A DNA stretch of 64,000 nt, from assembly GCA_965202585.1 (NCBI GenBank), contig CBDBBG010000245.1, positions 1 through 64,000 of the forward strand, written 5' to 3'. The DNA is from Thalia democratica. Its lineage: Eukaryota. The translations under genes and the position numbers were made by a program. Each line of letters opens with the position of its first letter. Position 1 is the first letter of the stretch. The notes beneath the pieces are model-generated. The model was not told the origin of the DNA, did no database searches, and saw only the letters and a list, made by a program, of their open reading frames with translations. Below are positions 4,210 through 37,690 of this stretch, in pieces.

Positions 4210-4775
4210 TTATTAATAAGGATTTTCCCACCATTGGATCTCAACTGCCTCATCAGCATTCTGAAGTTGCTGTAAGTTCAAATGAAAATGATCCGAATAG
4301 ACTGGAATCGCATAAAGATGTGCGCTTTATCACTCCGTTTGGCAGGTTCCCATGTACTAGAGCACCTCAAGGCTTTGTATCATCTGGTGACGGTTACAAT
4401 CGACGATTTGCAGCTATTTTATCTGATTTTGAAAAAAAGGAGAGGTGTGTTGATGACACCATATTTTTTGATTCAGAATTAGAGTGTCACTGGTGGCGAA
4501 CAATAGATTTTCTGTCAAAAGTTGGCAATGCAGGCATCATTCTAAATCCAAAGAAGTTCCAGTTTTGTCAAAAGTCCGTTGACTTTGCTGGATTTAGAAT
4601 TTCTGATGAACGTATAGAACCTTTGCCCAAATATCTGGATTCCATTCGCAATTTCCCAACCCCAAAGTCTGCCACAGATATACGCAGCTGGTTTGGTCTG
4701 ATAAATCAAGTCGCAAATTATGCCAAACTTCGTAAAATCATGGCACCGTTTAGAGATTTTCTCAGTCCAAAATGA
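4200..4775 (+). pseudogene. pol: Reverse transcriptase, C-terminal half only (N-terminal half deleted)
   Basis: FITPFGRF..APQGFVSSGDGYNRRF..RCVDDT..GIILNPKKFQF..VDFAGF..RSWFGLINQV. The upstream RT motifs are absent between the protease linker and FITP. Confidence 0.9.
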
Positions 4776-4819
4776 AAGTTTATGTGGACAGAAAAATTAA
4801 ACCAATCATTTAATGAATC

Positions 4820-5461
4820 ATTGACGCAATAAAGAGCGGTGTTCAAATTTTTGATCTTGGAAAACTGACTTGTCTTAGACCAGACTGGTCAAAGCAAGGA
4901 TTGGGCTACTTCCTTATGCAGAAACACTGCAAATGCAATAGCCGGTTACCAGATTGCTGCACCACCGGCTGGAAAGTGACGCTTGCAGGTTCAAGGTTTC
5001 TGAATGGGGCAGAAAAGAATTATGCTGCCATAGAAGGGGAGTCGCTTGCTATTGCTTGGTCATTAGAACAGACAAAGTATTTCACTAAGGGCTGCAAAGA
5101 TCTTGTGGTTGTTACGGATCATAAACCACTGGTAAAGATTTTTGGTGATCGCACCTTAAACGAAATTCACAACACGCGCATTTTTAGGCTCAAACAACGT
5201 ACTTTGCCATGGTTTTTTCAAGTGCATTACATGCCAGGTAAAACTAATCTATCGGCAGATGATGCATCGCGTTATCCAAGCTCGATTAGTGTAGTTAATT
5301 CATATGATAATGATTTGACTAACGAATCACTTCTAATTGCTTCATTGAGTAATGAAGTATGCCATTCAATGGCAATCACTTGGGAGGAAATTGTAGAAGA
5401 GACACTAAATGACAAAGTTCTTTCAAGAGTATCCAGGTGTATTGAGGAAGGTCGAAGCTAG
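4820..5461 (+). pseudogene. pol: RNase H domain
   Basis: RPDWSKQGLGYFL..YAAIEGESLAIAWSL..VVTDHKPL..ADDASRYP. Small deletion near 4820; stop at 5459-5461. Confidence 0.9.
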
Positions 5462-6866
5462 AAACATGATGAATCTTTGTCAGCGTATTTTAGATACGAT
5501 GATGCATTGTACTTAAGTGATGGGGCTATACTTTACAATGACAGAGTTGTAATCCCCGTCAGTTTACGATATCGGGTCCTCAACAAGTTACACTCGGCGC
5601 ACCAAGGAGTCACATCAATGCATAGTCGTGCCCAACAGATTGTCTTCTGGCCTGGTATTACACAAGACATTGTAGCAATTCAGGCCAATTGTCAAAGCTG
5701 CAACCGCAATTCACCTTCTCAACCATCATTGCCACAAGAAGCATCTGATCCTCCTACAAACCCTTTTGAAAAAATATTCGCAGATTTTTTTCAGTTTGCC
5801 CTAAACAATTTTTTGGTAGTCGGTGACAGGTTGCCGGGTTGGTCGGAAATATTTTCCACACCCAGCGGAACCTCTCAGGCAGGTTCGCGTGGGTTGATTA
5901 AGTGCCTACGAGTTTTGTTTTCCAGGTTTGGAGTACCCGAGGAAATATCGAGTGATGGTGGACCGGAATTTACGTCCAGTGCAACAAAGGAATTTCTTAA
6001 AACCTGGGATGTCACGCATCGAATATCTTCAGCTTACTATCCAAGATCAAACGGCAGAGCGGAAGTAGCCGTCAAACAGGTAAAAAGGTTGCTAAGATCA
6101 AATGTTGACGCTTCAGGAAGTCTGGACAATGACAAGTTTTTAAGTGCGTTGCTCCATCTGAGAAATACTCCTGATAGCGATTGTCAAGTGTCTCCAGCCG
6201 AGATCATATATGGACGTCAGCTGCGAGATAGTTTTTCATTCTTGAACAAACTTGACAAATTCTCCAATCCTAATGTGCGACCCATGTGGAGAAAAGCGTG
6301 GAAGCTTAAAGAAGAGGCGCTCCGTACAAGATTTGTTAAGAATTCTGAAGTACTTAACCAAAGAGCCAGGAATTTGCGGCCTCTCCATGTTGGCAGTAGG
6401 TGTTTACTACAGAACCAGAGTGACACTCATCCACGTAAATGGGACAGAAGCGGAGTGATAATGGAGGTGCTTCCACATGATCAGTATGTAGTCAGAGTTG
6501 ATGGTTCACGGAGACTTACTCGGAGGAACAGAAAATTTTTAAGGATGTACAACCCAGCCTCAACAAGCATTGAAGCAAAAACTTCCCATAGTTGGAGCAG
6601 TAATCTACCAAGCTCACATGAGTGCAATGTTGGTCCTCAACGTCCTGATTCTTCTGTAAAGATTACAGAGGATTCCAGCAGTGCCAATAGTGGTAAAACC
6701 AGTGAGGTTGAAGCGGATCATGAAGAGGTTGAGGAAGAGTACATTCCTGCTCCTATAGTTCCCAAAAAAAAATAAGGTGCCGCTTGCTTTGCGTAGGTTG
6801 AAAGACTTCAATGCGCCAGGGAGGCTTGAAAGTGGAGTACTCCAAAGTAGAAATCACCGTAAGTGA
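5462..6866 (+). pseudogene. pol: Integrase (HHCC-DDE + C-terminal domain)
   Basis: LHSAHQG..CQSC zinc finger; FADFF / ISSDGGPEF / SNGRAEVAVK catalytic motifs. After a +1 shift in the A-run at ~6770 it continues KVPLALRRLKDFNAPG.. to TGA at 6864-6866. Confidence 0.92.
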
Positions 6867-17730: not shown

Positions 17731-20700
17731 TTCTACATCTAAATTAAAATTTTTTTAATTTTTTTCAAGCCAAGTTCTGTGACTTATACTTAATAATAAT
17801 AAAAAATTAACATAAAAAAATTCCCATAAAAAATACCACATAGTACAGTGGTTAAAAACATTTTACCGCCCAATTCATGGAAATATGGTTGAAGATCCAG
17901 TTTATTATATACAGATATAGTGTACGGCATTTTGTGATTTTGTTCAATGACCTCACCACAAAAGAGAACTCGGTTGGTTCTCGCTTTTTTAAACGTTTTG
18001 CTTTTTAAATTCTTTATGTTTAAACGACAAAAATAATGGTTAGCAAATTCGTAACATAGCAGGACTAACAAAAAGATAACACTTTTGTTTAAAACTGGTT
18101 TAAAATATTTAATTGTAGAGCACAAAACTTAGCGATTTTGTTTAATTACATCACTACAAAAAAGGACTCAGGTAGTGAAAGTTCAAGTGAAGATTAATAA
18201 AAACTGTACAGCACAAAAGAAGTAGGAATGACTGTTCCAAGAATTAGGGGTTCGAGCAAAAGAATAATGAAATTTAATAAAAGAAACAACTCCCTGTCTC
18301 GGATTAGTGATGAATAATTACCTAATATACAGATAGACATTTTAACTTAATTACAAATATGATTTTTATTTTTAAACCACGTAACACGGTGGTCTTGAAA
18401 TATTCACAAATTAGAACACAACAAAATGATTTGGTAGATCTGGTTTATAATATATTGATAATGTACAAGATATTGCAATTTTTTTCAATTACATCACTAC
18501 TAAAGAGAATTCAGATATCGATTATATCTTTTTAAAGTTAATGTTTTTAGATCATTCAAAAAATTGTGATCAATACATATAAAAACCTTTAATAATCTAA
18601 TTATGTAACATAATTGTTGATAGTAAAACACTTTGATAGATAAACCGAGCGCCACTCTAAACTTTAAACCTTTTAATTGCGATTAAAACGCAATGCAAAA
18701 ACTAAATGTAAGAAACGTGGATTCAACTAAAAGATTAATTAAAATAAATAAAGGTAACAATTCCTTGTTTAGGATTAGTAATTAATAACCACCTACAATT
18801 AAGATACGCGTATGAATTCTGGTTCAGTAAAATCAGCTTCAAGTTTAAACCACTTATTACATTACAGTGGTGTGCAAATACTCAAAAACTGGATTGGTAA
18901 TTATTGTCAATGGAACAGGTTTTCATATACAATTATAGATTACAAGTTTTTGTGATTTTGTTCAACAACGTCACTCCAAAAGAGAAACAAAATGATTCTC
19001 TCTTTTTATTTTTATTTTTTAAACTGTATGTGATCAGTAGATACATGTATAATATCTACAAATGTATAATTATACAGCAGAATTGTTGGTAGAGTAAAAG
19101 ATGTTGAAAATTTTAAGATGTTTTAGTTTAAAGATGATAAGAACCATTGTATTGAGTACAAGCTACTACAAACAAAAGAAAAACAATCATCATAAAATCA
19201 ACACTGATGTAGTTGTTTAACTTTATAAGTGACAGTAATATTCAACATGCACAATGAACAGCAACACCAGCGTGTTTATTTGCGTATTTGGTAGTTGATA
19301 AAACAAACTATGTGCAAAACAACTTTTAAATTAGAGTGTTAGAATGTTAACTAACTCGAGTTCCTTTTTATCAACTTGTTATTCGAGGAAAGATTGACAA
19401 AATTTTTTCTGTAGAGCACAAAAGAGTAGGATCCATTAGATCTAAGAATTGATATTTAAGCAAAAGACTACTGTACTAGAATAGATGTAACAAATCCTCG
19501 TCTCGGATGAACAGTTACCTAGCATGCATACACGCATGTTAACTTTTTGCTTTCAAGGATGATTTTCATGTTTTTAACCACATAACACAGTGGTCTGCAA
19601 ATTTTCACAAATTCTCATAGAACATTGTATTTAGTTGATCTGGTTTATTATATACAAATATAATGTACAATATGTTTTCATTTTGTTCAATTACGTCATT
19701 ACAAAAGAGAAATCACTAGGTTATTTATTTTCAATTTTTTACTTTTCAAATTGTATGTGCTCAGTAAATACATGCATAAAAATCAACAACAAAAAAAGAA
19801 ACTGCATGCATTAATTATAGTTGAATAGGTATCTGCCTAATAGTTAAGCTCACTTTATATTTGTATAAAAATATTCTAAAACGAAACTGAAAGCTACCTA
19901 CGTCACTAAAACTTCAAAATGATCAATTTATCAAAATCTTCTACCAATGAATACTTACAATATATGAATATATCTTCTACAAGTACTTTCAATACAAAGA
20001 AAGATATTTACCAGTATAGTTTTCGAATTTTCCACAACAAATCTTTAAATCAAACGTAGTTGAAAAACAAGTAAAATAATTTAAAATCCTTTTGTTAGCT
20101 GGTTAAAATAAATTTATCAGCATGTTTTGAGTTGTTAAACATAAAGGAAATGCTTAAATTAAAACAATTTAACAATAATAGATACAATTATATTACAGTT
20201 TTAGAGGAAATAAAAGTTTTAGTGAAGATTAAGTAAACATTGAAGAAATTGTTTCAGTAACAAGTCAGAATAAGTACCAATTGTTAACCTTTATAATGAG
20301 TTTTGACTTTTATGATGAGTTTTCTGTTAAAAATAACACTATCCTTAATCTGAATAACTAATTTGGTGTGTACAATAGTTTTACCTGAGATTTATGCACA
20401 TTAATTTACACAATGTAAACGTTTACAAGAGTTATTTTTATGTTTAAACCAAATGAAATAAAGGGTTGTAAATTACTACGGTGGTTGGTAGAGCCATTTC
20501 TAGAACAATATAATGACTCGAGTGTTTAAAAAAAAATTAACATGCATGGCTTACAAGACAGGGCTTAACCCGGAATCAAACAAGTGTTGTTTAAGCAAAG
20601 ATTACTGAGTATGAACTTAGTGGAAAACTATGCTACTTGCCATAAAGGGATAAGTATTAATTTTCCGTTTACAAGAAAGTACTGAATATTTTAGCCACAT

Positions 20701-21221
20701 GACACAGTGGCTTGCAAATAAGAGTAGCATGAAACATAAATAGTAAGCTCTGACTAATCTGTTTTATATATACAGTTATGGAGTACGAGGTTTTGCGGTT
20801 TTGTTTAATTACGTCATGAAAAAGATAAACTAGTAGATTCTCTCTTTTAAATGTTATTTAAAAATTTAAACATTCAAAATATCGTGAATAGTGAATTTGT
20901 GTGCAAATATTAAAAAAATATTTTTACGAAGTACAACTGTTGACAGAGTAAATGAAATTCGAGAACTGAAAGATTAAATATTCGCATGTTAACTACCTCG
21001 AGTTCGTTTTTATCAACTGGTTGGTCGTAAAACTTCGAGTAATGATTGACAAAAATAAAGTAAAAAGATTAGGATTAACTGGATCTAGTAAACGTGGATT
21101 CAACCAAAAGCTTATTGATTTTTAAACAATGGTGGCATACTCCTTGCTTCGGATGAGTGATGAACAGTAAACTCAGCATGCAGACACGCATGTTAACTTT
21201 TTGAAGACGATTTTTATGGTT

Positions 21222-21274
21222 AAACCACATAACACAGTGGTCTGCAAATATTCTCAACCTATTCCATAGCTAAT
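21222..21274 (-). ncRNA. Representative predicted small RNA unit (unique 5' segment + Sm-like motif + stem-loop)
   Basis: Predicted AUUAGCUAUGGAAUAGGUUGA-GAAUAUUUGCAG-ACCACUGUGUUAUGUGGU; TATA and GTGACGTAATTGAAC lie upstream on the minus strand. Inferred only. Confidence 0.4.
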
Positions 21275-21379
21275 GGTATTATTTATCCAGTTTCTATAAA
21301 AAGATATAGTGTACAATATTTTGTGATTTCGTTCAATTACGTCACTACAAAAGAGAATTCGGTTGGTTCTCTCTTTTTT

Positions 21380-23037
21380 CAGGGTTGCCACTCTTTGAGC
21401 CAAAAAATCTTCCCTGAGTGACCAAAAATTTCCCTGAGTAACCTTAAATTTCCCTGAGTTTCCCTGAGTATTTTTTCAAATCTTAAAAAAAAAAATTTCT
21501 CTTCTAACACAAATTATTAATACCTCATTCTCATTTTTCTTCTTTAATAATAAAAGGAAGGTTGTATGTGTATGCTTCTGCATTAAATTTATGAAAAACT
21601 GTTTTCAAAACTCAATCTTAAAAGGTTTAAACCAATTTAAAATTTGAAACTAAATTTTTGCACAACTTTGTGTAAACTTGTTAGTTAACTTTCTACATAA
21701 AAGAATAAAGTTTAATTTGTTTAAAATTTTAATTGACAAAATTTCTTAAGCTATAACAATAATTTCACATGAAGAACTCACTTAAATGCATACATAATAA
21801 CTTCATTATGATTTGTATGTCTTTCCTAGCAACTGTTCTGAATGCAGTAAATAAAACTTAAAAGCTTAACATTATTGTAAAAAAACCTGCAAAAAGAAAG
21901 TTTAAAGAAATAGCTTAAGAAATATCTCATATCAAAGTACAACTTAATACCTAACAACTGATACAAAATAATCTAAAATTAAATTTTTTTTATGTCTTTT
22001 AGATGTTCATACACAATCTGTTTTAAATAATTGAAAACATAATTTTGATTTTAAAAGAATTTCACATTACCTAATAAAAAAATCTTAATACTGTTTTTTT
22101 AAGTATGCAATTTCTAAATCAATAGTTTTAATTTTATTTTCAAGTTTATTTGCTTTGTCCTTAGCAGCTATTCCTCTTGCTAACAATTCTTTCATTGCTT
22201 CTAAAATCAGACTGTTTGTTGGCATCTGCAGTATATTTGTCATAGTCTTCATTCAAACATTTGAGTTGCTTTGTAAGTTTACTTTTTTGTTCTCCTAACT
22301 TGCTCAAAGCATCACCTTTATTTGGAACATTTTTAGCAAAGCGCTGTTGCTCAAGATATGCAAAATATTGGGCCCTAGAAGATTTTACAAATGTTAACAA
22401 TTCAGAACTTAGTTCAACTGTGCTTGGTTCTAGACTGTTTGCATATAGATGATCTTTGATCATTCTTAGGGACCTTATTGTCATCTCTCCCATATTAGTT
22501 GATATTACTTCCTTATTTAAGCTAAAGCCCCGTTCAACACTTGCCTGGCCATTGTGAAGCACAAAAACAGCCTCAAGGACTCTTGTTAAATCTGTATACT
22601 TGCTTGGGATATCGAGTGTGTCAAAATAAAAGGTGTCTAAACTGTGACTTTTTTCAAGAAAATTTTCAAAAAGTATTTGAGTGTTAGAAGAACTTAAAAA
22701 TCAATGTATTGATTTATGCTGTCATCAACCTCTTTTGCTTTTAGTATCTTCATGCTGACAAGTTGTTGGACCAACCTTGTAAAGTTTCTGACACAACGGT
22801 CTTTACCCATTCCAATTAGACATGCTGGATTTTTTAACAAAAGTAATACAACACTAATCTGTATTCATTTTAATTTTTTTACTGAAAACAAGTAGTTGTA
22901 AACAAATAACAAATAACTTCCCTGAGTTTCCCTGAGTTAAAAGAAAAATGCCAAAATTCCCTGAGTTTCCCTGAGATTTTCTACAGTTTGAAAATTTCCT
23001 GAGATTCCCTGAGTTCCCTGAGTGTGTGGCAACCCTG
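21380..23037 (-). mobile_element. Internally deleted hAT-related DNA transposon (probably hAT5-like)
   Basis: TIR CAGGGTTGCCAC/GTGGCAACCCTG; many subterminal TTCCCTGAG repeats; T-run duplicated on both sides relative to empty sites in sister units. Minus-strand remnant LDTFYF..VLHNGQASVERGFSLNK (22161-22820). Confidence 0.85.
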
Positions 23038-23479
23038 TTTTTTAAAGGTTTTACTTTTGAAATCGTATGTGATCAATAGATATATGTATAAAAATCTACA
23101 AAAATATATATTTAGCAGAACTATTCATAGAGAAAAAAAAACTTGAAAAACTTAAAAATCTTACAGTATTACTTGCAAAACTTATAATAAAAAAGTCATT
23201 TTCAAAAACATATAGAACATTTATGAACATATAAATATAGAAGCAGAAAAGCTAATAGCTTCGAGTTTCTACTTAAATATGTAAAACAAAACACCTGGTA
23301 ATAAATTAACTACGATGAATTTATAAGTACTTTTTTCTATATGTTTAGTATTGAACACATAATCTGTCTTTGATAACCATCAAGACACAAATTCAAAGAT
23401 AAATAAAAATCACAGCATTATACAGAGTATCACACTTAATAATTGATAGCCCTTGTATGTTAACACAAACAAATACTAA

Positions 23480-23794
23480 TTAACTTATTTTAAAGTTTAG
23501 TTTTTTTATAAATTCCAACATTCAAAGTCTTTTAAACTATAAAAGGAACATTTTCTGAAAGTTTGAGGTCTCTACCTTAAAAAATAAAGGAGAAAATAAA
23601 TTTTTAATTATTCTTTAAATTTCCGAGAAAATTGACCCCAAAAAACTTGCTGTCTATACGTTTGTATCAGAAAATTTTTGTTAAAGTTACAATATCTCAA
23701 AAGTTAGATAAGATTTTTTAATTCTATGAAAACTGGCTTGTAGCTTTCATTTAAGATCAAATTTTATTTTTAGTAAAAATATGTCGGACCGCCC
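23480..23794 (-). mobile_element. TTAA-ended non-autonomous element fragment (Kolobok-like), related to 48565-49171
   Basis: Ends GCCC|TTAA. It is reverse-complement similar to 48565-48790 (ctacaagccagtttt, ggggtcaattttctc, ctcaaactttc) and interrupts a spacer that is intact at ~26880. Confidence 0.55.
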
Positions 23795-26700
23795 TTAAGT
23801 CCTTAAACAAAAAACAACCATCATAAAATCAGCACTAATGTAGTTGTTTAACTTTACAAGTAACAGTAATATTTTACATGCAGATTTAACAGCAACACCA
23901 GCGTTTATTTATTTGGTAGTTAATACAAAACAACTTTTGATTTGATAATATTTTAAGACTGTTAGAATGATATCTAACTCGAGTTCGTTTTTATCAAACT
24001 GTTGGTCGAGTAAAAATTGAGAAAGAATTTTTCTGTACAGCAAAATCGGATGTGATAATTGGGGTTCAAGCAAAAGATTACTGATTTTTAAGCAATGGTG
24101 ACAAACTCCTTGCTTCAGATGAGTTATGAACAGTTACCCACCATGAAGACACGCATGCTAACTTTTTGATTACAAAGATGATTTTATGTTTAAACCACAT
24201 AACACAGTGGTCAGCAAATAATTCTATGGACTTGCAAATGCATTTGAATCCATGATCCGGTTTTTATATACGAATATCGTGTAAAATATTTTGTGATTTT
24301 GGGGAATGACGTCACCACAAATAAGAATTCGGTTGGTTCTCTCTTTTTTAAACGTTTTGCTTTTTAAACTCTTTATGTTTAAACGACAAAAATAATGGCT
24401 AGCAAATTAGTAACATAGCAGGACTAACAAAAAGATAAAACTTTGGATTACAACTGGATTAAAATATTTAATTGTAGAGCACGAAACTTAGCGATTTTGT
24501 TTAATTATGTCATTACAAAAATAACTCAGGTAGTTAAAGTTCGAGTTAAGATTAATAAAAACTGTACAGCACAAAAGAATTAAGAAATAAATAAGATCTA
24601 AGAATTAAGGGTTCGAGCAAAAGAATAATGTAATTTAATAAAAGAACAACTCCCTGTCTCGGATTAGTGGTGAATAATTTTACCTTATTTACAGATAGAC
24701 ATAATAACCTTTAATTTACAAATATAATTTTCATGTTTAAACCACGTAACACAGTGATCTTGAAATATTCACAAATTAGAACACAATATAATGATTTGGT
24801 AGATCTGGTTTATAATATAGTGATAATGTACAAGATATTGCAACTTTGTTTAATTACATCACTACTAAAGAGAATTCAGATATCGATTATATCTTTTTTA
24901 AAGTTAATGTTTTTAGATCATTCAAAAAACTGTGATCAATACATATATAAACCTTTATGATCTAATTATGTAACATAATTGTTGATAGTAAAACATTTTG
25001 ATAGATAAATCGAGAGCAACTCTTAACTTTAAACTTTTTAATTGCGATGAAACGAATTGCAAAAACTAAATGTAAGAAACGTGGATTCAACTAAAAGATT
25101 AATTGAAATAAATAAAGGTAATGATTCCTTGTTTAGGATTAGTAATTAATAATCACCTACCATAAAGATACGCGTATTAACATTTTGTTCAGTAAAATCA
25201 GCTTCACGTTTAGACCACTTAATACAGTGGTGTTCAAATACTTAAAAACTGGATTGGTAACTATTGTCAATGGAACTGGTATTTCATATACACTTATAGA
25301 TTACAAGATTTTGTGATTTTGTTCAATTACGTCACTAAAAGAGAAACAAGTAGATTGTTTAATATTTTAAATTTAAAACATTCAAAACGTTGTAAACAGT
25401 GAAGCTGTGTGAAAATATTTTCAAAAAATTAATTTACGAAGTAGAATAGTTGACAGAGTAAAAGAAATTTGAAAACTTTATGATTAAGTATTCGCATGTT
25501 TACTAATTCAAGCTCGTTTTTACCAACCTGTTGGTCGTTTTAGTTTGAGTAAACAGGTTGATAAAAAGGAAAGTTTTCTGTACAGCAGAAATAAGGGGGA
25601 CACTAACTGGATTTAAGAAAAGTAAATTCATGTAAAACATATTTTATATACACTTATAAAGTACAAGATTTTGTGATTTTGTTCAACTACGTCACTACAA
25701 ATGAGAAACAAGATGATTCTCTCTTTTTATTTTTACTTTTTAAATTGTATGTGATCAGTAGATACATGTATAATATCTACAAATTTATAATTATACAGCA
25801 GAATTGTTGGTATAGTGAAACATGTTGAAAACTTAAGGATGTTTTAGTATATAGATGATAATAACCATTGTATTGAGTGCAAACTACAACAAACAAAACG
25901 AAAAACAATAATAAAAAAAGCAGTACTGATGTAGTTGTTTCAGTTTACAAGTAAAAGTAATATTAAACATGCACAATAAACAACAACACCAGCGTGTTTA
26001 TTTGCGTATTTAGTAGCTGATAAAACAACTATATGCAAAACAACTTTTAAATTAATAATATTTTAAGTTCTAACTCGAGTTCGTTTTTATCAGACTTTTA
26101 GTCAAGAGAAGAGCCAAGATTGACAAAAGTTTTCTGTACAGCATAAAAGAGCGGGATCTGAGAATTGGAGTTCAAGCAAATTTCTTACTTCTGTTTCTGA
26201 TTGTTAAACAATGATGACAAGCTCCGGACTAGCGATGAACAATTACATACAGACACGCATTTTAACTTTTTGCTTACAAAGATAATTTTCACGTCTAAAC
26301 CACATAACACATTAGTCTAAAAATAATCCTATAGACTTGTGAACTCACTGATTACCTTAGAAGAGTTTTTTATAAACACATACAGTGTACAATATTTTGT
26401 GATTTTGTTCAATTACGTCACTACAAAAGAGAATTTAGTTGGTTCTCTCTTTTATAAATGTTTTACTTTATAAATTGTACGTGATCAATAGATATATGTA
26501 TAAAAATCTACAAAAATATGTACATATTTAGCAGAACTGTTCATAGAGAAAACATGTTGAATAACTAAAATCTTACAGTCTAACTTGCAATACTTGTAGT
26601 AAAAAAGTCATTTTAAAAAACATCTAGAATATTTCTGAGTACATAGAAGCAGAATAACTAATAGGTTCTAGCTTCTACTTTCTACTCAAATAGGTAAACC

Positions 26701-29700
26701 TGGTAATAAATTAGCTACAATGGTTTTAAAACTACTTTTTTCTATATGTTTAGTATTGAACACATAATCTGTTTTTAATAACTACCAAGAAACGACTTCA
26801 AATAAAAATACAAATTACATATTTTCAGAGTATCACACTTATAGCGTAATTGATAGTATTTGTATGTTAACACAAACAAATGCTAATTAATTTAGTTCGA
26901 AAAAATTATCGTTTTTAGTAATAAAATATTATAGCTATGCAATCTTTATATTATGTTAATCATAGTACAGAGCACACTTTACAAAAAAGACACCACATAA
27001 AAGAACAGTTTGATTATTTTAAGTTTAATAAATTTAAGTTGTATTTTTAGGTGTACATCGTAAAAATAAATTAAATTTATTGGAATTAAGACTTAACAAT
27101 AAACAACAAAGACAAGGTTACGATTTGACAAACTATTAGATTAATAAGCAAATTAAACTGATTAAATATGTCTAAAGTATATAAATTTTTGTATTTCAAT
27201 AGAACTACTCTACTTAAATAAACAAACAATGTTTTCACCATAATTTTGAAGAAAACATTTCTTTTTATGTACAGCCACTAAGTAATGGATTACATATTAA
27301 TTACAACGAGGTTTAAATCATGCAAGTCTATCGGTGGCTTTATATTTGTATCAAGTTTTTTCTTCTTAAAATACTTTCAATAACTCACGTCATTAAACTG
27401 TTCTAAACGAATTTTCATAAATATCAACAGCATAGTTGCTCGGGGATTAGAAATGTTCATATTAATTTATTTGAACAAATTTCCAGCGCAGACTTTAAAG
27501 TTTGTTTCGACCACACAACAGAATTTGAAAAAATGTAATAACTGCGTGTTTATATTAAGCGGTAGGTAATTAACTAGGTAACTTGCTTACATACCATTCA
27601 GCATACTTTTCTATTATTAAGACAAGGTTATTACTGGTTTTGAATAGTTCTTTGTTTTTAGTATCTGAAGTAAAAAAGTTTTCATTCCACATGTTAGTTC
27701 TAAAATGTAAGGAAATGTTTTAACAGAACAGAACTTAGATTTAAATGAATGATAGTGCACAAGAATTTGCAGTTTCGTTCAATTACGTCACTAAAAAGAG
27801 AATTCGTTCGATTCTCTTTATTTTTGTTTCAATTCAATGTTTTTTAAAAACATTCAAAACATTGTGTAAAGTAAATTTGTGTGCAAATAATTTCAAAAAA
27901 AAAATTACGAAGTAGAATTGTTGACAGAGTAAAAGGAATTTGGAAACTTAAAGATTAAGTATTCGCGTAAAAACTGACGCAACTATGTTTTATCAACCGG
28001 TTGGTCGTAAAAGTTCAAGTAATGATTAACAAAAATAAAGTTTTCTGTAGAGCATAAAAAAGTGGGATTAACTGGATCTAAGAAACGTGGATTCACAAAA
28101 AAGATTTAAGAAATTAAATAAAGGGAACAACTGCTTGTTTCGGGTTAGTAATGAATAGTCATCTACCATAAAGATGTTCGTATTAACTTTTTGTTCAGAA
28201 AGATGAGCTTCATGTTTAAACCACGAAATACAATGGTGTGCAAATTTTAATAAAATGGCTGAGGAACTGGTATCTAGTATTAACTTATAGATTACAAGGT
28301 TTTGTGATTTTGTTTAACTACGTCACTACAAAAGAGAAACCGAATGATTTTTTCTTTAAAATTTTTGTAGTTGTTTAACTTCACCAGTGTTTTTTTGCGT
28401 ATTTGATAGCTAATACAAAACAACTTTTAATTCAATAATATTTCAAAGAACGTAATCATGTTAAATAACTCAAGCTAGTTTTAATCAACCTGTTATTTGA
28501 GTAAAGATTGACAAAAAGGTTTCTGAACAAAAGAGTAGGATCCATTGGATCTAAGATTTTGAAGTTTGATCAAAAGATTATTGTATTTTAAACAAATTTG
28601 ACAAGCTCATTATTTCGGATTAGTGATTGGCAGATACCTTATATGCAGACACGCATGTTTGCTTACAAAAGTGATTTTCATGTTTTAACCACATAACACA
28701 GTGGTCAGCAAATATTCCCCTCGAGTCTTTAATTATAAATAATTAATTGCACTTTTCATAAACAGATATAGTGTACAACATTTTGTGATTTCGTTCAATT
28801 ACGTCACTACAAAAGAGAATTCGGTTGACTCTCTCTTTTTTAAATGTTTTACTTTTTAAATTGTATGTGATCGATAGATATATGTATAAAAATCTACAAA
28901 AATATGTATTTAGCAGAACTATTCATAGAGAAAAAATGTTAAGAAACTTGGAAATCTTACAGTCCAACTTGCAATACTTCTAGTGAAAAAGTCATGGTTA
29001 AAAATATCTAGAATACTTATAAATATATAGAATATGTATATTTATATATAACTACGTTTAAACCACATAACACAGTGGTCGGCAAATACTTACACTAGGA
29101 GAGGAGTTTCATGATTTGTAGATCTGGTTTTATATAAAGTGATAATGTACGAGATTTTGCGATTTTGTTCATCTACGTCACTACAAATGAGAATTCACAT
29201 ATCGATTTTATCATTTTTAATTTTAATTTTTTTGGAAGATTTAAAAACCTGTGATCAATAGACATAATAATCTTATTATGTAACATAACTGTTAAGAGTA
29301 AAATATTTTGAAAGATCAACCGAGGATAACTCTAAACTTCAAACGTTTAATTGTGATGGAACAAATAATGAATTAAGAGAGTAAAACATGTTAAAAATCT
29401 ATGTATGGTATAGTTCATCTTGCAATAATTTTAGTAAGGAATTAAAATGTAAAAACAACTAGTTTTCAATACAAATCAAATTCTATTATATTTTTTATCG
29501 AATTACTTTAATTAATTTGTTTAATATTGAGCATATACATCTCACTAATCAGTACTTTAAACAATAGGCACTACTCTGTACTTAAGAATTTAAAACAATA
29601 AAGCTGGTAACAATTTAACTACAATCATTGAATTTTTTTCTATATCTTAAGTATTATATACATAATTTCTATTTAATGACCATAAAAGTTACTGCTACCC

Positions 29701-31474
29701 ACCTTAAAATAAAATAGAAAATTTTATATTTTTAACACAAGTTTCACTGTTGTTGACATAATAAATATTGACTAATTAACAGCTTTTTTAGTGAACTAGC
29801 ATGTAATCATTTTTTTTATTTTTACACAAATAAATTCCAAGTAACTTATTTCGAAAATAACGTTTTTTTCAATAATAAATTTTCAAACAAAATGCTTTAT
29901 AGAAAATAACAACTGTTGTATTGAGCGCAAACTATAACAAATTAAACAAAAACAGTCATCATAATATCAACACTGATGTAGTTGTCTAACTTTACAAGTA
30001 ACATTAATATTCAACATGCATATTGAACAAGAACTTCAGTGTTTTTTTTTTGCGTACTTGATAGTTAATACAAAACAACTTTTGATTTAATAATATTTTT
30101 TATTAAAGTTAGCATGTTAACTAACTCAAGCTCATTTATATGAACCTGTTAGTCGTAAAAGATCTAGCAAAGATTAACGAAAGTTTTCTGTAAAAAAACA
30201 ACTTTTGATTTAGTAATGTTTTAAGAGACTTCGCATGTTAACTCGAGTTTGTTTTTATCAACCTGTTGGTCGAGTAAAGATTAATAAAAAGAAAGTTTTA
30301 TGTACAGCATAAATGAGCAGGGTCCATTGGATCTGAGAATTCAAGCAAAAGATTACTGATTTTAAACAATGATTACAAAATTCTTACTCTGATGAACAGT
30401 AACCCAGCTTACTGACACGCGCATTAACTTTAACGCTTACAAAGATGAGTATCATGTTTAAACCACATAACACAGTGGTCAGCAAATGTCATCCTGTCTA
30501 TGAAAATATTGAATTTTTGATTCCGGTTTAATATATACAAATATAGTGTAATATATTTTCTTATTTTGATCAATTACGTCACTACAAAAGAGAATTCGGT
30601 TGGTTCTCTCTTTTTAAACGTTTTGCTTTTCAATTTCTTTATGTTTAAACGACAAAAATAATGGCTAGAAAATTAGTGGCATAACAGGACGAATAAAAAG
30701 ATTACACTTTTGTTTACAGCTGGTTTAAAATATTTAATTGTAGAGCACAAAGGTTTAGCAATTTTGTTCAATAAGTCATTGCAAAAAAGAACTCAGTTAC
30801 TAAAAGTTCGAGTAAAGATTAATAAAAATCTGGACAGGAAAAAGAAGTAGGATTGACTGTTCTAATAATTAGGGTTTAGAGCAAAAGAATAATTAAATTT
30901 AATAAGAGAAACAATTCCCTGTCTCGGATTAGTGATGAATAATTACATAATATACAGATAGACATATCAACCTTTTAAATTACAAATAAGATTTTCATTT
31001 TTAAGCCAAGTAACACAGTGGTCTTGAAATGTTCATAAATTGGAACACAATAAAATGATTCGGTAGATCTGGTTTATAATATAGTGATAATGTACAAGAT
31101 ATTGCAATTTTGTTCAATTACATCACTACTAAAGAGAATTCAGATATCGATTATATCTTTTTTAAAGTTAATGTTTTTAGATCATTCAAAAAACTGTGAT
31201 CAATACATATAAAAACCTATAATAATCTAATTATGTAACATAATTGTTGATAGTAAAACATTTTGATAGGTAAATCGAGCGCAACTCTAAACTTAAATCT
31301 TTTTAATTGCGATGAAACGCAATGCAAAAACTAAATGTAAGAAACGTAGGTTCAACTAATATATTAATCAAAATAAATAAAGGTAACAATTCCTTGTTTA
31401 GGATTAGTAATTAATAATCACCTACCCATACAGACGCGCACATTAACTTTATGATTACACCTATTAGTTTCATG

Positions 31475-31531
31475 TTTAGACCACATAACACAGTGGTCTA
31501 GAAATATTCACCGCATGAAAAGGAATGTCAT
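31475..31531 (-). ncRNA. Representative predicted small RNA unit
   Basis: Predicted AUGACAUUCCUUUUCAUGCGGU-GAAUAUUUCUAG-ACCACUGUGUUAUGUGGUCUA; perfect 8-bp stem TAGACCAC/GTGGTCTA (31477-31500). Inferred only. Confidence 0.4.
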
Positions 31532-32157
31532 GGTTAGGTAGATCTGGTTTTTATGCTAGTGTACAAGGTTTTGCGATTTCGTTCAAATACGTTACCATAT
31601 AAAATTATTCAGGTCGTAAAAATTCAGGTGAATATTAATAAAAAAATGTACATCACAAAAGAGTGGGATCCAATGGACCTAAGAATTGGGGGTTTGAACG
31701 AAAAAATACTGAATTATAAAAAACAAAATTAATAAACTCGTTGTCGCAAATGAACAGTTACCTACCATACAAACATGCATATTAACTTTTAGATTACAAT
31801 GATGATGTTATAACCACATAACATAGTAGTCGTTTAATAATCTTATCGAATTGCAAACGCACTGATAACCTTGATCCGGTTTTTAATATACATATACAGT
31901 GTACAACATTTTGCGATTTCGTTCATCTACGTCACTATATAAAAATATTCAGGTCGTAAAAGTTCAGGTAAATTTTAATAAAAAAATGTACAGCACAAAA
32001 GAGTGGGATCCATTGGACCTAAGAACTGGGATTCAAGCGAAATATTACTGATTGTTAAACAAAGGTAAACAACTCATAATTTCGGATGAGTGACGAACAG
32101 TACCTGCCATACAGACACGAATATTATCTTTTCGCTTACAAAGATCATTTTCATGTT

Positions 32158-32212
32158 TTAATCACATAACACAGTGGCCAGTAAATATTCTTGCCCATGG
32201 CCAAAGTTAATT
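32158..32212 (-). ncRNA. Representative predicted small RNA unit
   Basis: Predicted AAUUAACUUUGGCCAUGGGCAA-GAAUAUUUACUG-GCCACUGUGUUAUGUGAU; the stem is imperfect. Inferred only. Confidence 0.33.
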
Positions 32213-33169
32213 GCATTATTGATCCAGTTTAATATGAACAGATATAATGTACAACTTTAAATTTTTATTCAATTACGTCACCACAAATAAGATTTCGGTT
32301 GATTCTCTCTTTTTTTCTACTAGAGCCACATAACATAGTAATTTGTAAATTTAAGCAACTGCTGTTATAATAATGCAATATATAACTTATTTATTAAACT
32401 AGTTTTTAATATACAATTAAAAAGAGAAACATTTTACGATTTTGTTCGATTAAGTTAATACAAATTCAGTCGATTCTTTTTTTATTTAAAGTTTTGAAGT
32501 TGTATGTGATCAGCATATTAATTACATATTTTTAAATGTTGAAGAGTCTACAAATATTTGAATATTTTACAGAACTTTTACAGATATTTTTGAAAGCAAA
32601 ACTGTTCAATTAGATTAAGTGTTGAATGACTTTAAATAATTTGTTTAGTTATTAGCTGATAATTAGATGATGATACGTCTCACATTGGTATATTGAATAT
32701 ATATTATAAGGTCTTAGTCTCTAGTTAAAAAGTTAAAACAAAGTTAAATAACTTGTTTAGTGTTTAGCATATACATCTCACCAAAGAGGTAAATTGAATA
32801 TATAAGAGCAGAAAAATTATCTCTAATTAAGAAGTTAAGACAAAAAAGGTGGTAATAATTTAACAACAATCATTGTATAATTTTTGTTTTACTTTATCTT
32901 AATAATTGAATACATAAATTTTGATTAATGACCATCAAGATTAGTGATAACCAACTTAAAATAAAAAAGAACATACTTAATTGTCACTGTTGAAATAATT
33001 AATAATGACTGACTAATAGCTTTTATATTGAACTAGCATGATTTATTTTTGTTCACAAATAAATTCCAATTAACCTATAGCGAAAATAACTTTTTCTTTT
33101 AATAATAAAATGCCAGAGCAAACAAAAAACTTTAAAGATAATAACAAACATGTTGTATTGAGTGCAAAC

Positions 33170-36100
33170 CAGTGGCGTCGCGTGGTACTTTTGTTAGGGG
33201 GTGCTGCAGATTGAGTCGTCAACTCAAAAAAATCCCCTAATTTGAAACATTAAAATAAAACTCAAGAAGTTAAAGAGAATAGGGAAAATTTTAAGCTAAA
33301 AGTCTTTAAGATATTAGCTTAAATGCTTTTTAATATGAATATAAAAAAAAAACATGATATACTTAAAAATATATAGTTTTTACTTTTATACTTAAATTCA
33401 AATATACGAGAAATTTATTTAAAAGTACTTAATGAAGGAAATAGATTACTAAGTTGCTAAAAATGTTTATCATAATACATAAATTTACAATATATCATAC
33501 ATTGATAAAAAGTTTGTATGTATTAACAAAACTTAATTATAAGAGCAAAATAAGTTTTATTTTTACAGATTAACAAAATATTTTTTTTTTCATGTTTAAA
33601 TAACTTCTCACAATACAACTTTTAAAAAGATTTAAAAACTACGTATTTAACTATTCAAACATCAATTCTTTTATAAACAACAAAAAGAAAATATGTCTAC
33701 CAAAATGAAATTGAGGATCAGAAAATATTATTATAACTATTTTGTAGATTTTAAAGTTAACTCAAAAAGTAAAGTAACTTTTAAAGCAATTAAAAAAAAA
33801 TTGCTTTAAACAGTAACTTTGTTTCTTTTGAGTTACTTACTTATGTTTCATTAGTAAAAAATAACATGATAATTGAAAAAAAATCACACTAGAAGGAATT
33901 TTCTTTTAAAACTTTTACAATGCAACACAAAAGTATTGAAAAAGTTATAAATATTACAGCAGCAAAAAAAAATTGACTTTATTCTTAAATTAGTTTTACA
34001 CACTAAAAAAATTAAATAAAATTCTACATACGTTTTGAAGCATATATAATTTTATATCACTTATAAAAAAATAAAAAGCAAAATTTAGTCAGAGTTAGCT
34101 TTCAATATAGATAATTAACAAACAAAACAAAACTTGTTTAAAAGGTCTTTGTTTGCAAATTAAATAACTATAAGTTGTAAAATAACCTTTAAAAATTTAT
34201 AACTAGGATCAAAAAACAATTATCTAAAACAACTTAGTTCTACTAAAAACATAATTAAAGTTAAGTCAGAAGTCTGTTCATGATAATAAGAAAACTATTT
34301 TTTACTTATATAGGTAAAATGCATCCTTCTTTCTTTATTCTAACAAACATTTCTAATACCTTCGAATTAAAACCATCACAGTCACTAACTAGACCTCGAC
34401 CAATTGCTAATACACTCAAAGAATTAAGTCTTGTCTGGCCTAAAACCTCTTGGGTAATTGAAATATCTGGTGTTGGTCTGCTGTTTTTAACTTAAGCTTT
34501 TCAAATTCAGACAAAGCATTTATATCAATGCGTTTAAGCTGATCCACAGTCCATTCACTATAAATTGTAGTTTGCATGTTATTATTTTTAAAAATAACCT
34601 AAAAAATTAATTATGCTTTTGTTAAACTATTTGTGAAATTTTTACAAGGTACTGATATTTCAAAGCTAATATTTTTTTAAAAATAAAGTATCTTGTAATA
34701 TATAAGTAACGATTTCATATAATTTCTAATGTTAATTTTTGTTATAAAAAAATTATAGACCCCCTATGTCCTTAACACACTTTCTATATACTTTATATTA
34801 AATATTTTTTTCATTTAGAATAAATAGATGAAACTTGTTAGTTTTAATACAAATTGATATAAGTTTAACTATGAGAATTGTATTTTGTTGTGTAAGTAAG
34901 TTTATCTAAAAACTTTAATGTATTTGCCTAAAAATCAAATAAAGATAAACAATTAGTTTGTTTTTTGTTAAGTCAGTTTGTACTTCCCTCTCATTATAAA
35001 ATTTTAGTACTCTCCAACTTTAATTAACTATATGTCAAAATTCAATTCAAAGAGCAATTCAAAACAATTTATAGTTTACTTAAAAGTTTACAAATGTAGC
35101 TCAAGCTGTATAAACTTATGCATTAATATCAATTTAAATTTTATGTCAACCATACAGAAATCATGGAGTGGTATCATAGTTCATTAAAAAATGTTTTTGT
35201 TATTTTGATCAGAATCACATAAATGCTTAAAATAAAAATAAAGCAACAACTTAATGTAAGGAATTTTACAGAAAAAAAAACTATTTCACTATATCTTACC
35301 TTTTCAATTTTTATCAGCAATTGTTAGCAAAGTTTTTTAACAAAATAATTAATATTTTTATTTTTTAAGAACAGAATTTTTAATTTTTGAGTTTTTTTTT
35401 AGTTTAAAACAATTTTTTTTTATATCTTTCATCATAATATTGTTCTAAATATTTTTACACTAAGTTGAGAAAACTTTAGGTTGTAGATCTCAAATAAAAA
35501 ATTTTAATTTTTTATGCACATTTTATTATCAATATAAGGCAGTTACATTTAAAACTTGCATATAACTTGTTAGCTACATATTGCTTATTTCAATACTAAA
35601 ATTATTAAAAAACAAAATTAGTAATATTAAAAAGAAATTCAATTATTTTATGTAAATAAGATAGGTAGAATTTGATTTCTTTTACTTTAAAGTAATCTGG
35701 AATAAAGAATTATGATGTATGAAAATAAATTCTTAATGACCATTTTTTAAAGAATTATCAATAAAACACACACAAATTTATTGAGTTTTGAATTTTTTTA
35801 AATAATGTCCTTTAAAAACTTATTAGAACTTTTGACTTGTATAGTTTTTTTTTGTATATGTGTTGACCATTGGGTTTTGATCTTGCACTTTCATCTCAAA
35901 TACTAAACTTTACTTTCACTGTATTCAAGTTGTTTACATTTAGTAGTTATTTCAATGTATAATGTTCACAAACTAATTAACAGTGTATTCATATTCACTA
36001 TATTCTTAATATTCAGTTTAAATAAACATAGCGCTGCATTGAATGCAGCTCTAAAAATAAGCTTTTAAACAACATTTTGTATAGGAAGTTTGTATATGTT

Positions 36101-36314
36101 TAAAATGCAGCTCACACTGTTTTAGCTTGCAGCGCCAGCGATTTAACGAATATTTGAAAATTGAATGTAAAATTTGAAAAACTAACAAATTTATGGTTAA
36201 GTTCAATGAAAAAAAGAAGGAAACTGAAACAAAGGGTAATTTTCTTTTTTCTTCTTTTTCTTTTTGAATAGGTGGGACTGCAGCTCCATTGTGCCACCCC
36301 ACGCGACGCCCCTG
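33170..36314 (-). mobile_element. Non-autonomous hAT element (3145 bp)
   Basis: TIR CAGTGGCGTCGCGTGG / CCACGCGACGCCCCTG (15/16 match); perfect 8-bp TSD GTGCAAAC; the flanks rejoin into the array spacer ttgtattgagtgcaaac..aacaaa. Confidence 0.95.
34295..34577 (-). pseudogene. hAT transposase remnant: N-terminus fused to the C-terminal dimerisation region
   Basis: MQTTIYSEW..EFEKLKLK(N)SRPTPDISITQ is joined directly to EVLGQTRLNSLSVLAI..FNSKVLEMF..KERRMHF; the catalytic core is absent. Confidence 0.7.
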
Positions 36315-36322
36315 GTGCAAAC

Positions 36323-37690
36323 AACAAAAAATGAAAAATGAAACAATCATCACAAAATCAACATTGATGTAGTTGTTCAACTTTATAAGTAACAATAATA
36401 TCCAACACGCGTATTGAACAACAACACCAGTGTTTTATTTTAATTAGTACTTAATACAAAACAACTTTTAATTTGATAATGTTTTAAGAGACTTCGCATG
36501 TTAACTAACTCGAGTTCGTTCTTATCAACCTGTTAGTCGAGTAAAACTTGACAAAAGTTTTCTGTACAGCATAAAAGAGTGGGATCCATTGGATCTTAGA
36601 ATTGGGGTTTAATCGAAATATACAAAGATTTTATACAAAGGCAACAACTTCTGTCTTGGATGAACGATTACCAACCATGAAGACACGCATGATGACTTTT
36701 TTCTTACAAAGATGAGTTTTATGTTCAAACCACATAATACATTGGCCTGCAAATATCCTCTAAACTTAAAAGTATACAAAATTATTGATTCCGGTTTAAA
36801 AGATACAAATATAGTGTACAATATTTTGTGATTTTGTTCAACTACGTCACTACAAAAAAGAATTCTGTTGATTTTTTTTTTAACGTTTTACTTTTTAAAT
36901 TGTATGTGATCAATAGATATATGTATATACAAAACTACAAAATTATATAAAAATACAAAAGAAATTGTATGCATTAATTATAGTTGAGTAAGTATCTGTC
37001 TAAGAGTCAAGCTCACAATATTTTGTATAAAAACTTATACAATTTTTTACCAATGAATATTTACAAAATATGAATATATCTCTTACTTTAAGTATTTTCA
37101 ATGCAAAGAAAGATATTTACTAGTATAGTTTTTAAATTTTCACAACAAATACTTAAATGAAACGTAGTTGAAAAACAAATACAACAATTTAAAGCCTTTT
37201 ATTGTTTGGTTATAAACATATTTAATAGCATATTTCGAGTTGTAAAACATTAAGGAGATGCTTAAATTAAAGCAACTTAACAATAATAGAAACAATTATT
37301 TTACATTTTAGAAGAAATAAAACGTGTTAGTGAAAATCAAGAAAGCAATTGAAGAAAGTATTTCAGTAACAAATTGTATATAAATATCATTTTTTAACCT
37401 TAATGATGAGTTTTGAATTTTAGATAAGTTTTCTATTTAAAATAACACAATGCTAAATCTGAATAAAGTGTTTTGTGTGTACAATAGTTTTACCTAATGC
37501 AGATTAATTTACACAATGTAAACGTTTAGAAAGTTATTTTTATGTTTAAACCACATGAAATAAACGCTTGCAAATTACTACGGTAGTTGGTAGAGCCTTT
37601 CTTAAAACAATATGATGAATCGAATTATTATATAAGTATTTAAGGCCCACTAAATATATAGATTTAAAAAAAAATTACTAGGTTCTAATC
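36323..37690 (-). repeat. Distal segment of the cassette array
   Basis: One full unit (cassette 36759-36786, ACGTCAC at ~36844) plus a spacer duplicating ~19740-20500. Confidence 0.88.

Follow-up and report, generated by a model that had tools for sequence, protein, structure and literature searches.

Which genes, if any, stand behind a promoter-like block that is repeated ahead of short sequences with no likeness to one another? The question is raised by the minus strand of the window analysed here, the whole 64,000-nucleotide (nt) stretch from contig CBDBBG010000245.1 (contig C254 of an 802-Mb genome, whose other contigs are numbered likewise). The window is AT-rich, with about 25% G+C. Promoters of small nuclear RNA (snRNA) genes that depend on the snRNA-activating complex (SNAPc) contain a proximal sequence element (PSE), with or without a TATA box, and serve U1, U2, U4 and U5 through RNA polymerase II (Pol II) and U6 and 7SK through Pol III. 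An earlier note on this DNA had read the repeated block as an snRNA-like promoter placed upstream of short variable cassettes. We consider it most likely, with a probability of roughly 0.6, that the units are, or were until recently, small non-coding RNA genes, each under a host snRNA-type external promoter, with a promoter geometry nearest that of U4 and a variable patch that straddles the start site. They thus have the look of a large family, so far undescribed, of small-RNA genes that each have their own promoter and a 5' segment free to vary.

Organization of the repeated units

The 15-mer GTGACGTAATTGAAC, allowing up to three mismatches, has 24 matches in the window; they span 11604 to 36850, and every one is on the minus strand. 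Shuffled sequences give 1.74 matches and none reaches 24, which confirms the repeated minus-strand motif that had been described before the cassettes. A second box, ATCACAAAATATTGTACAC, lies downstream of the first and has 10 matches (0.07 expected). The window holds 19 complete units, each with the motif, TATA sequences, a variable patch of about 30 nt (the cassette), a U-rich block and a short hairpin. Read along the minus strand, a unit begins with TTCTCTTTTGTA, GTGACGTAATTGAAC, AAAATCACAAAAT and TTGTACAC, continues with TATAT, three bases, TATATAA and AAACCGGATC, and then passes through some 30 variable bases into AATATTTGCAG, an ACCAC/GTGGT stem around an 8-nt loop, TTAAACATGAAAATCATCTTTG and further conserved sequence. 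Counted from the G of GTGACG, TATAT lies at +37 nt, TATATAA at +45 nt and the patch at about +63 nt, so that the geometry given in the earlier note holds. The hairpin starts 103-108 nt past the same G in 44 of 51 distinct units; because this distance is nearly fixed, the length of the patch is kept although its sequence is lost.

The CpG of the motif is retained in 18 of the 24 matches and is gone from the cassette-less copies at 18154 and 24513, as had been stated. It is also gone from an otherwise complete sub-family with GTGATG (18497, 24862 and 31126). The unit at 21345 serves as the exemplar:

21221-21357, minus strand: complete unit 21345, with the motif G at 21345, the patch at 21253-21282, and the U-rich block and hairpin at 21221-21252.
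21337-21344, minus strand: octamer TGACGTAA, which matches TGACGTCA of the host snRNA genes; TCTCTTTTGTAG stands before it at 21345-21356.
21319-21325, minus strand: CACAAAA box, 11 nt past the octamer; host U6, U1 and U4 have CACAAA(C) or GCAAAC at 10-12 nt.
21285-21308, minus strand: TATAT, then a TATA-like box some 44 nt past the octamer T, then AAACTGGAT; the region is comparable to TTTATAAAC at -29 in U4 and to AAACCGACGCG-TATATATA in U6.
21271-21275, minus strand: predicted start, CCATT, with its A at octamer T +70, placed from host spacing and the CANT peak.

Comparison with host snRNA promoters

Host U6, U1 and U4 genes were located with Rfam models, and the octamer TGACGTCA was found in all but one of the copies examined. 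In U6 it lies at -83/-82 and is followed about 12 nt on by CACAAA, then by AAACCGACGCG and by TATATATA at -31. U1 has it at -75 to -72, with a CACAAAC or GCAAAC box in some copies and no TATA. In U4 the octamer lies at -72 (-74 in one copy), preceded by CTTCTTTTG and followed by CACAGCAAAC, and most copies have a TATA-like box at -29, either TTTATAAAC (TTTATAA) or TTTATAT. Most of these genes have a pyrimidine-rich run (CTCTC or CTTCTTTTG type) ahead of the octamer, and about half have CACAAA(C) or GCAAAC 10-12 nt past it. The units share these parts, in the same order and at the same spacing (TCTCTTTTGTAG, TGACGTAA, 11 nt, CACAAAA), and then continue with TATATAA, a T and AAACCGGATC.

We also made a profile of nothing but the unit promoters and ran it over 130 kb of sequence at host snRNA loci. 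Its individual E-values are weak, from 0.1 to 10, but most of its best matches, 12 of the top 13 among them, fall 45-95 nt upstream of U4, U1 or U6 in the correct orientation, and one match precedes a second U1 gene inside a single locus (L023). Such placement before three unrelated gene classes is very unlikely to arise by chance. The check that the earlier note had proposed, a comparison of the motif with the upstream regions of host snRNA genes, is thus positive, with the octamer at -72 to -83 in U1, U4 and U6. The shared octamer, pyrimidine run, CACAAA box and spacing support its snRNA-like reading and, with it, the assignment of the upstream block to the host snRNA-type (PSE-class) promoters. 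The likeness to the human U6 PSE that had also been pointed out is superficial and unconvincing, and the interpretation does not need it.

Two further features of the host snRNA genes were seen. The tandem repeat that carries U5 lies on contigs C26, C37, C79, C100, C141 and C208 (loci L055-L062), and its upstream region is G+C-richer. At the first position of the model, the U1 genes (L013-L024) begin with AAACTTACCTG instead of the ATACTTACCTG of most animals; this start may bear on unusual splice sites that have been reported from some tunicates (PMC13326754).

Predicted start site and RNA product

Host snRNAs start 72-75 nt (U1, U4) or 82-83 nt (U6) past the octamer T, and U4, whose start is at offset 72, has C|A or T|A there. 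Adding 29-31 nt to the TATA of the units leads to offsets 73-75. For an initiator, the earlier note had proposed a YCA motif in most cassettes, which stands in part. CANT has a weak positional peak: its A falls at offsets 68-72 in 9.8 of 27 independent cassettes, whereas other windows average about 3.4. Plain CA, at 12.5 of 27 and 4-10 in other 5-nt windows, was judged not enriched after paralogous cassettes had been collapsed; it was dropped as an initiator, and with it the claim for most cassettes. YRNT occurs in 19.6 of 27 at offsets 68-72 and in about 8-16 in windows further along the patch.

The predicted RNA would start at about offset 70, end past the hairpin and measure about 52-55 nt. 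Its parts are an arm of about 20 nt specific to each unit, AAUAUUUGCAG and a stem of 5-7 bp; for comparison, the Sm site of host U4 is CAAUUUCUGCAAG and that of U1 is CAAUUUCUCC. A stem core of 4-5 bp pairs in 49-51 of the 51 units via unchanged bases. At E-values up to 10, Rfam returned nothing for one unit and nothing for the stretch at 27.5-27.8 kb. The U7 covariance model had no match in the window at the gathering threshold or in one unit at E up to 10, and a prefiltered genome search for U7 also gave no match, a weak result as its control likewise found nothing. A C/D small nucleolar RNA was considered for the plus-strand GUGAUGA and dropped, the only match being an insignificant one to SNORD29 (E 7.5).

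Extent of the family and conservation of its parts

A genome search with one unit finds relatives only at 13.47-14.81 Mb of C1, a chromosome-scale contig on which almost all lie on one strand, and on three small contigs, C254, C368 and C192. The segment C192:64054-66459 bears the cassettes of window positions 31508-32281 in reverse orientation with 0-1 mismatch, and C192 is probably an allelic, duplicate or redundant contig of this region. From 30 fetched loci we obtained 81 unit matches. Full-length units number 54, and the cassettes are of about 26 different kinds. Cassettes recur between blocks (18154, 18497 and 18974, for instance, correspond to 24513, 24862 and 25335), which fits the higher-order block duplications seen in the window. 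The remaining members in the window are as follows:

17832-20829, minus strand: five more complete units, with motif G at 17956, 18497, 18974, 19699 and 20817.
18154, minus strand: decayed cassette-less copy within 17832-20829; this copy and those five units lie outside the range stated in the earlier note.
24191-24327, minus strand: complete unit with the full TGACGTCA octamer at 24307-24314 and the hairpin at 24210.
24738-24874, minus strand: complete unit, GTGATG variant (CpG lost), with a cassette common to 18497 and 31126.
25211-25347, minus strand: complete unit with a cassette common to unit 18974.
25633-25707, minus strand: promoter block alone, with unrelated sequence in place of the downstream part.
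26296-26433, minus strand: complete unit with TCAGT at the predicted start.
27729-27803, minus strand: promoter block, followed by a dispersed-repeat fragment instead of cassette and hairpin.
28217-28338, minus strand: unit with a shortened variable patch, its hairpin 90 nt past the motif.
28685-28819, minus strand: complete unit.
29059-29193, minus strand: complete unit whose cassette has no other genome match at up to three mismatches.
30459-30594, minus strand: complete unit with TCAAT at the predicted start and seven paralogues in its cassette cluster.
31002-31138, minus strand: complete unit, GTGATG variant.
31477-31607, minus strand: complete unit with its hairpin 99 nt past the motif; the cassette occurs elsewhere only in the duplicate contig C192.
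31810-31947, minus strand: complete unit.
32158-32293, minus strand: complete unit; the cassette occurs elsewhere only in C192.
36726-36862, minus strand: complete unit.

When the 54 full units of the window and of its paralogous arrays are combined in a profile, the consensus of the earlier note comes out again. The stretch from TTCTCTTTTGTAGTGACGTAATTGAAC to AAACCGGATC, with CACAAAAT and the TATA region between them, is rich in information; the roughly 32 columns of the patch have about 0 bits, and the content rises again at AATATTTGCAGACCACTGTGTTATGTGGTTTAAAC and is high from AATATTTG on. Promoter and hairpin have evolved more slowly than the patch and the far flank. Mean identity over all pairs, and within clusters of units that share a cassette, is 0.60 and 0.79 for the far upstream flank, 0.77 and 0.88 for the promoter, 0.37 and 0.76 for the variable patch, 0.78 and 0.87 for the U-rich block with the hairpin, and 0.69 and 0.82 for the next 67 columns. 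The higher identity of promoter and hairpin indicates that both are under purifying selection relative to the flank. The patch has changed recently about as fast as the far upstream flank, a rate that we take as close to neutral; its unusual trait is the complete lack of identity between clusters at constant length.

Older, diverged units lie on the minus strand at 9831, 10784, 11617, 12547 and 13599, with a period of about 0.95 kb, and at 41885. They retain the octamer, mostly as TGACGTCA, and most have a TATA-like box about 45 nt on; those at 11617, 13599 and 41885 also have a hairpin of the ACCAC..GTGG(TT) type, or its first arm, with a different loop. The one at 10784 is the variant TGACGTCACACTATTCTTACCACAAA, which recurs at 13.7-14.9 Mb of C1, interleaved with the arrays there. 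Further recurrent bipartite variants on C1 include TGACGTAACAAACATACTAACACAAA, TGACGTAAGTTCAGAAATACCACAAA and TGACGTCACTAATGTTTGCACAAA. Genome-wide, the bipartite pattern TGACGTMA-N9-13-CACAAA, which catches only a third to half of the known host snRNA promoters, has 1875 matches against 183 for the reversed control, an approximately tenfold excess that fits a genome-wide superfamily.

Active genes or a dead repeat

Several results weigh against small-RNA genes. The CANT peak is present in only about a third of the independent cassettes. Compensatory changes in the stem number one or two at most among 51 units, the hairpin being conserved by sequence, and folding z scores of -0.1 to -1.6 are no better than shuffles, with the hairpin in 4 of 6 minimum-energy folds. 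Rfam at its gathering threshold has no match in the window. Long units can be aligned for about 560 nt downstream, which a gene of about 55 nt leaves unexplained, and several copies are decayed or interrupted by transposons. The U5 copies lack the TGACGTCA element; all 48 scored matches are identical and lie in one tandem repeat of about 15 kb. A run search with a 6-kb query returned only two DNA-like runs of one study and no RNA run of the species. With host U1 as bait we found marine metatranscriptomes holding up to half of its sampled words, which fits a planktonic animal; four of these marine datasets, compared with 26240-32239 (nine units), gave no contig on any unit.

Alternatively, an ancestral snRNA-type gene could have been amplified in the manner of a satellite, leaving its motifs as fossils and the patch as the least constrained stretch. 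Such a dead tandem repeat would agree with the missing RNA run and metatranscriptome contigs, with the loss of the CpG in some copies and the transposon interruptions in others, with the alignability of the whole unit of about 700 nt, with the higher-order block duplications, and with a patch whose divergence in shared-cassette paralogues is close to that of the far upstream flank (0.76 against 0.79). We nevertheless regard it as unlikely. Promoter and hairpin surpass the flanks within clusters (0.88 and 0.87 against 0.79) as well as between them (0.77 and 0.78 against 0.60, and 0.37 for the patch), the patch has kept its length while its sequence identity was wholly lost, deeply diverged units retain the octamer and mostly also the TATA box and the hairpin, and the mutable CpG persists in 18 of 24 copies.

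Metatranscriptome contigs within 26240-32239 lie only at 27587-27697, at a depth of about 190. The interval 27567-27725 (minus strand) is the dispersed-repeat fragment that replaces the body of the unit with its promoter at 27791. This repeat has at least 40 genome copies on many contigs, at 75-89% identity and with no upstream octamer, and its copies have in common an exon-like stretch that starts with ATG. The contigs were therefore rejected as unit expression; they belong to the dispersed repeat and say nothing on transcription of the units.

Two mobile-element remnants were also seen in the window. Between units, 21400-23050 (minus strand) is a transposon-like insertion with repeated ACTCAGGGAA motifs at both ends, in which one open stretch with stops resembles, by eye, a hAT-type dimerisation domain. 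At 3154-6775 (plus strand) lie the pol remnants of a long terminal repeat retrotransposon, with open reading frames (ORFs) for RT RNase H, integrase zinc-binding and integrase core domains.

Choice of polymerase

The distance from the octamer T to the TATA-like box is 44 nt in the units, 43 in U4 and 52 in U6. Where the earlier note had held the polymerase to be undecidable from sequence, this spacing, near that of U4 and unlike that of U6, argues modestly for a Pol II snRNA-type geometry. There is no fixed T-run after the hairpin among 50 units, as expected for a Pol II snRNA gene. The sequence ATCATCTTTG, 10 nt past the unit hairpin, resembles ATCATCATTG, which lies 12-15 nt past the U4 genes, and is only a lead; no common 3' box was found in the U1 flanks, and none shared by U1 and U4 could be derived.

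The same promoter class could instead act as in U6, with TATATAA directing Pol III; the product, about 135-175 nt long, would include the hairpin and the conserved block behind it and end at a T-run some 100-140 nt past the hairpin. The TATA box of the units is better than that of U4, the block past the hairpin is conserved, a first run of four or more T occurs 61-150 nt past the hairpin start in 24 of 50 units, and the long-unit consensus has CTTTTG about 137 nt past the hairpin. We think this option rather improbable, because the spacing of 44 is that of U4 and the U6-specific AAACCGACGCG precedes the TATA in U6, whereas the related AAACCGGATC follows it in the units. In addition, runs of four or more T lie inside the variable patch in 13 of 50 units and in the U-rich block or hairpin in 7 more, where Pol III would stop early, a pattern that speaks against this polymerase.

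Possible messenger-type promoters or spliced leaders

The octamer TGACGTAA and its variant TGATGTAA are classic basic leucine zipper (bZIP) sites of the half cAMP response element (CRE) and C/EBP-ATF response element (CARE) kind. Together with the good TATA box and with short ORFs that begin at AAACATGAAAATC in some units, this could suggest ordinary CRE/ATF and TATA promoters of Pol II that drive mRNAs or long non-coding RNAs (for small peptides, for example), the patch being a 5' untranslated region or a short coding stretch. We find little room for it. Neither strand has a frame that stays open across units, whether in ORF lists or in frame-by-frame extension around the hairpin, and median open runs span 6-23 codons; what the units share with host snRNA genes includes, besides the octamer, the CACAAA box, the pyrimidine run and the spacing; and the four metatranscriptomes gave no poly(A)-type contigs on the nine units compared.

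Tunicates make very short spliced-leader (SL) RNAs from tandem gene arrays (PMC7986045), and several units have GTGAAT or GTAAGT directly before the U-rich block, but SL genes with diversified leader exons, in which the 5' arm would be trans-spliced to mRNAs and the U-rich block would be the Sm site, are very improbable here, since no more than 19 of 51 units have GT where the donor would lie (counted from the hairpin, G at -15 in 30 and T at -14 in 19, with no conserved GT anywhere), the leaders have no common sequence whereas every described SL family shares its leader, and no cassette is joined to other sequence in the contigs of the four metatranscriptomes. The SL-B1 leader of Hydra (PMC7986045) found no match in this genome, in a search that passes over very common words; a Hydra origin thus gains no support.

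Cassette sequences

Three cassettes of good complexity, searched genome-wide with up to three mismatches, match only themselves and their C192 copy, and the controls were empty. Local BLAST of 51 cassettes against the window and the fetched loci returned only paralogous units. Such results indicate that the patches are not captured fragments of other DNA and have no near-perfect antisense targets; the searches address near-perfect matching, and partial pairing cannot be judged by them.

Proposed mechanism and meaning

For units read as snRNA-type genes, we propose a promoter of four parts: the pyrimidine run, the octamer TGACGTAA, CACAAAA 11 nt past it, and a TATA-like box at about 44 nt followed by AAACCGGATC. 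The first three would occupy the place of the PSE and recruit SNAPc, perhaps with a bZIP factor on the octamer. With the spacing of U4 and U1, transcription would start about 70-75 nt past the octamer, inside the variable patch. The first 8-10 nt or so of the patch would then be an untranscribed spacer, and the next 20 nt or so would form the unit-specific 5' arm of an RNA of about 55 nt that runs into AAUAUUUGCAG and the hairpin of 5-7 bp.

Two candidate functional models may be considered, a U7-like antisense role and a short capped RNA like the nematode 21U-RNAs. More tentatively, it is possible, if doubtful, that a chordate relative, probably a pelagic tunicate, has made its snRNA promoter machinery the basis of hundreds to thousands of mini-genes, each under its own promoter and with its own arm of about 20 nt on a common U-rich-plus-hairpin scaffold, which might serve as programmable U7-like antisense RNAs or as a convergent counterpart of the 21U-RNAs. 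If the units are transcribed, the snRNA-type promoters of this animal would serve, beyond the few spliceosomal RNAs, a large and clustered set of short RNAs whose arms differ from unit to unit. To our knowledge, one SNAPc-type promoter per unique sequence of about 20 nt has so far been known only in nematode PIWI-interacting RNA (piRNA) genes, and engineered U7 antisense RNAs are the only case we know of in which the 5' arm on a U7-like scaffold can be replaced. The comparison also defines the snRNA promoter of this host as the octamer TGACGTCA with a CACAAAC box and TATA spacings for Pol II and Pol III that lie about 9 bp apart, a definition useful for annotation and for expression tools in this animal group.

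Comparison with known systems

Like SNAPc-dependent snRNA promoters in general, the promoter of the units is external and keeps a conserved element a fixed distance upstream. This element matches that of host U1, U4 and U6 in sequence, order and spacing, and a TATA-like box likewise lies about 30 nt before the expected start. Unlike the PSEs of vertebrates, flies and plants, the octamer is here a CRE-like palindrome, TGACGTCA in the snRNA genes and TGACGTAA in the units. In this host both U4 (Pol II) and U6 (Pol III) have a TATA-like box, at spacings about 9 bp apart. Unlike SNAPc-dependent genes, what stands behind the unit promoter is not a known snRNA.

The tunicate SL arrays resemble the units as tandem arrays of very short RNA genes of the Sm class in what is probably also a tunicate host, but the units lack a conserved leader and a GT donor. 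Nor do the units resemble a CRISPR-like array or a piRNA cluster of transposon fragments, as the three cassettes searched genome-wide match only themselves and the duplicate contig C192.

U7 snRNA shares its layout and size with the predicted product, namely a single-stranded 5' arm of about 20 nt, a U-rich Sm-like block, a 3' hairpin and about 55 nt in all, and an snRNA-type promoter is common to both. The units lack a conserved 5' arm, the part with which U7 pairs with histone pre-mRNA; their arms are all different, and therefore at most a few could fit the histone downstream element. U7 has few genes, against dozens to hundreds of units, the stem of the units is short and shows almost no covariation, and the Rfam U7 model does not match the units.

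The mini-genes of nematode 21U-RNAs, a class of piRNAs, are driven by SNPC-4/USTC (PMC6317315, PMC6436959, PMC7917550). This animal is not a nematode, and the units are known here from DNA alone. The Ruby motif CTGTTTCA, about 40 nt upstream in 21U loci, does not occur in the units, whose consensus has the host snRNA element instead, and 21U loci lack the conserved U-rich block and hairpin. As in the 21U-RNA genes, however, one promoter of snRNA-type machinery serves each unique sequence of about 20 nt, a weak CANT (YRNT-like) signal lies at the predicted start, the three unique sequences searched lack near-perfect genomic targets, and the genes are clustered, the units in the megabase-scale region at 13.47-14.81 Mb of C1.

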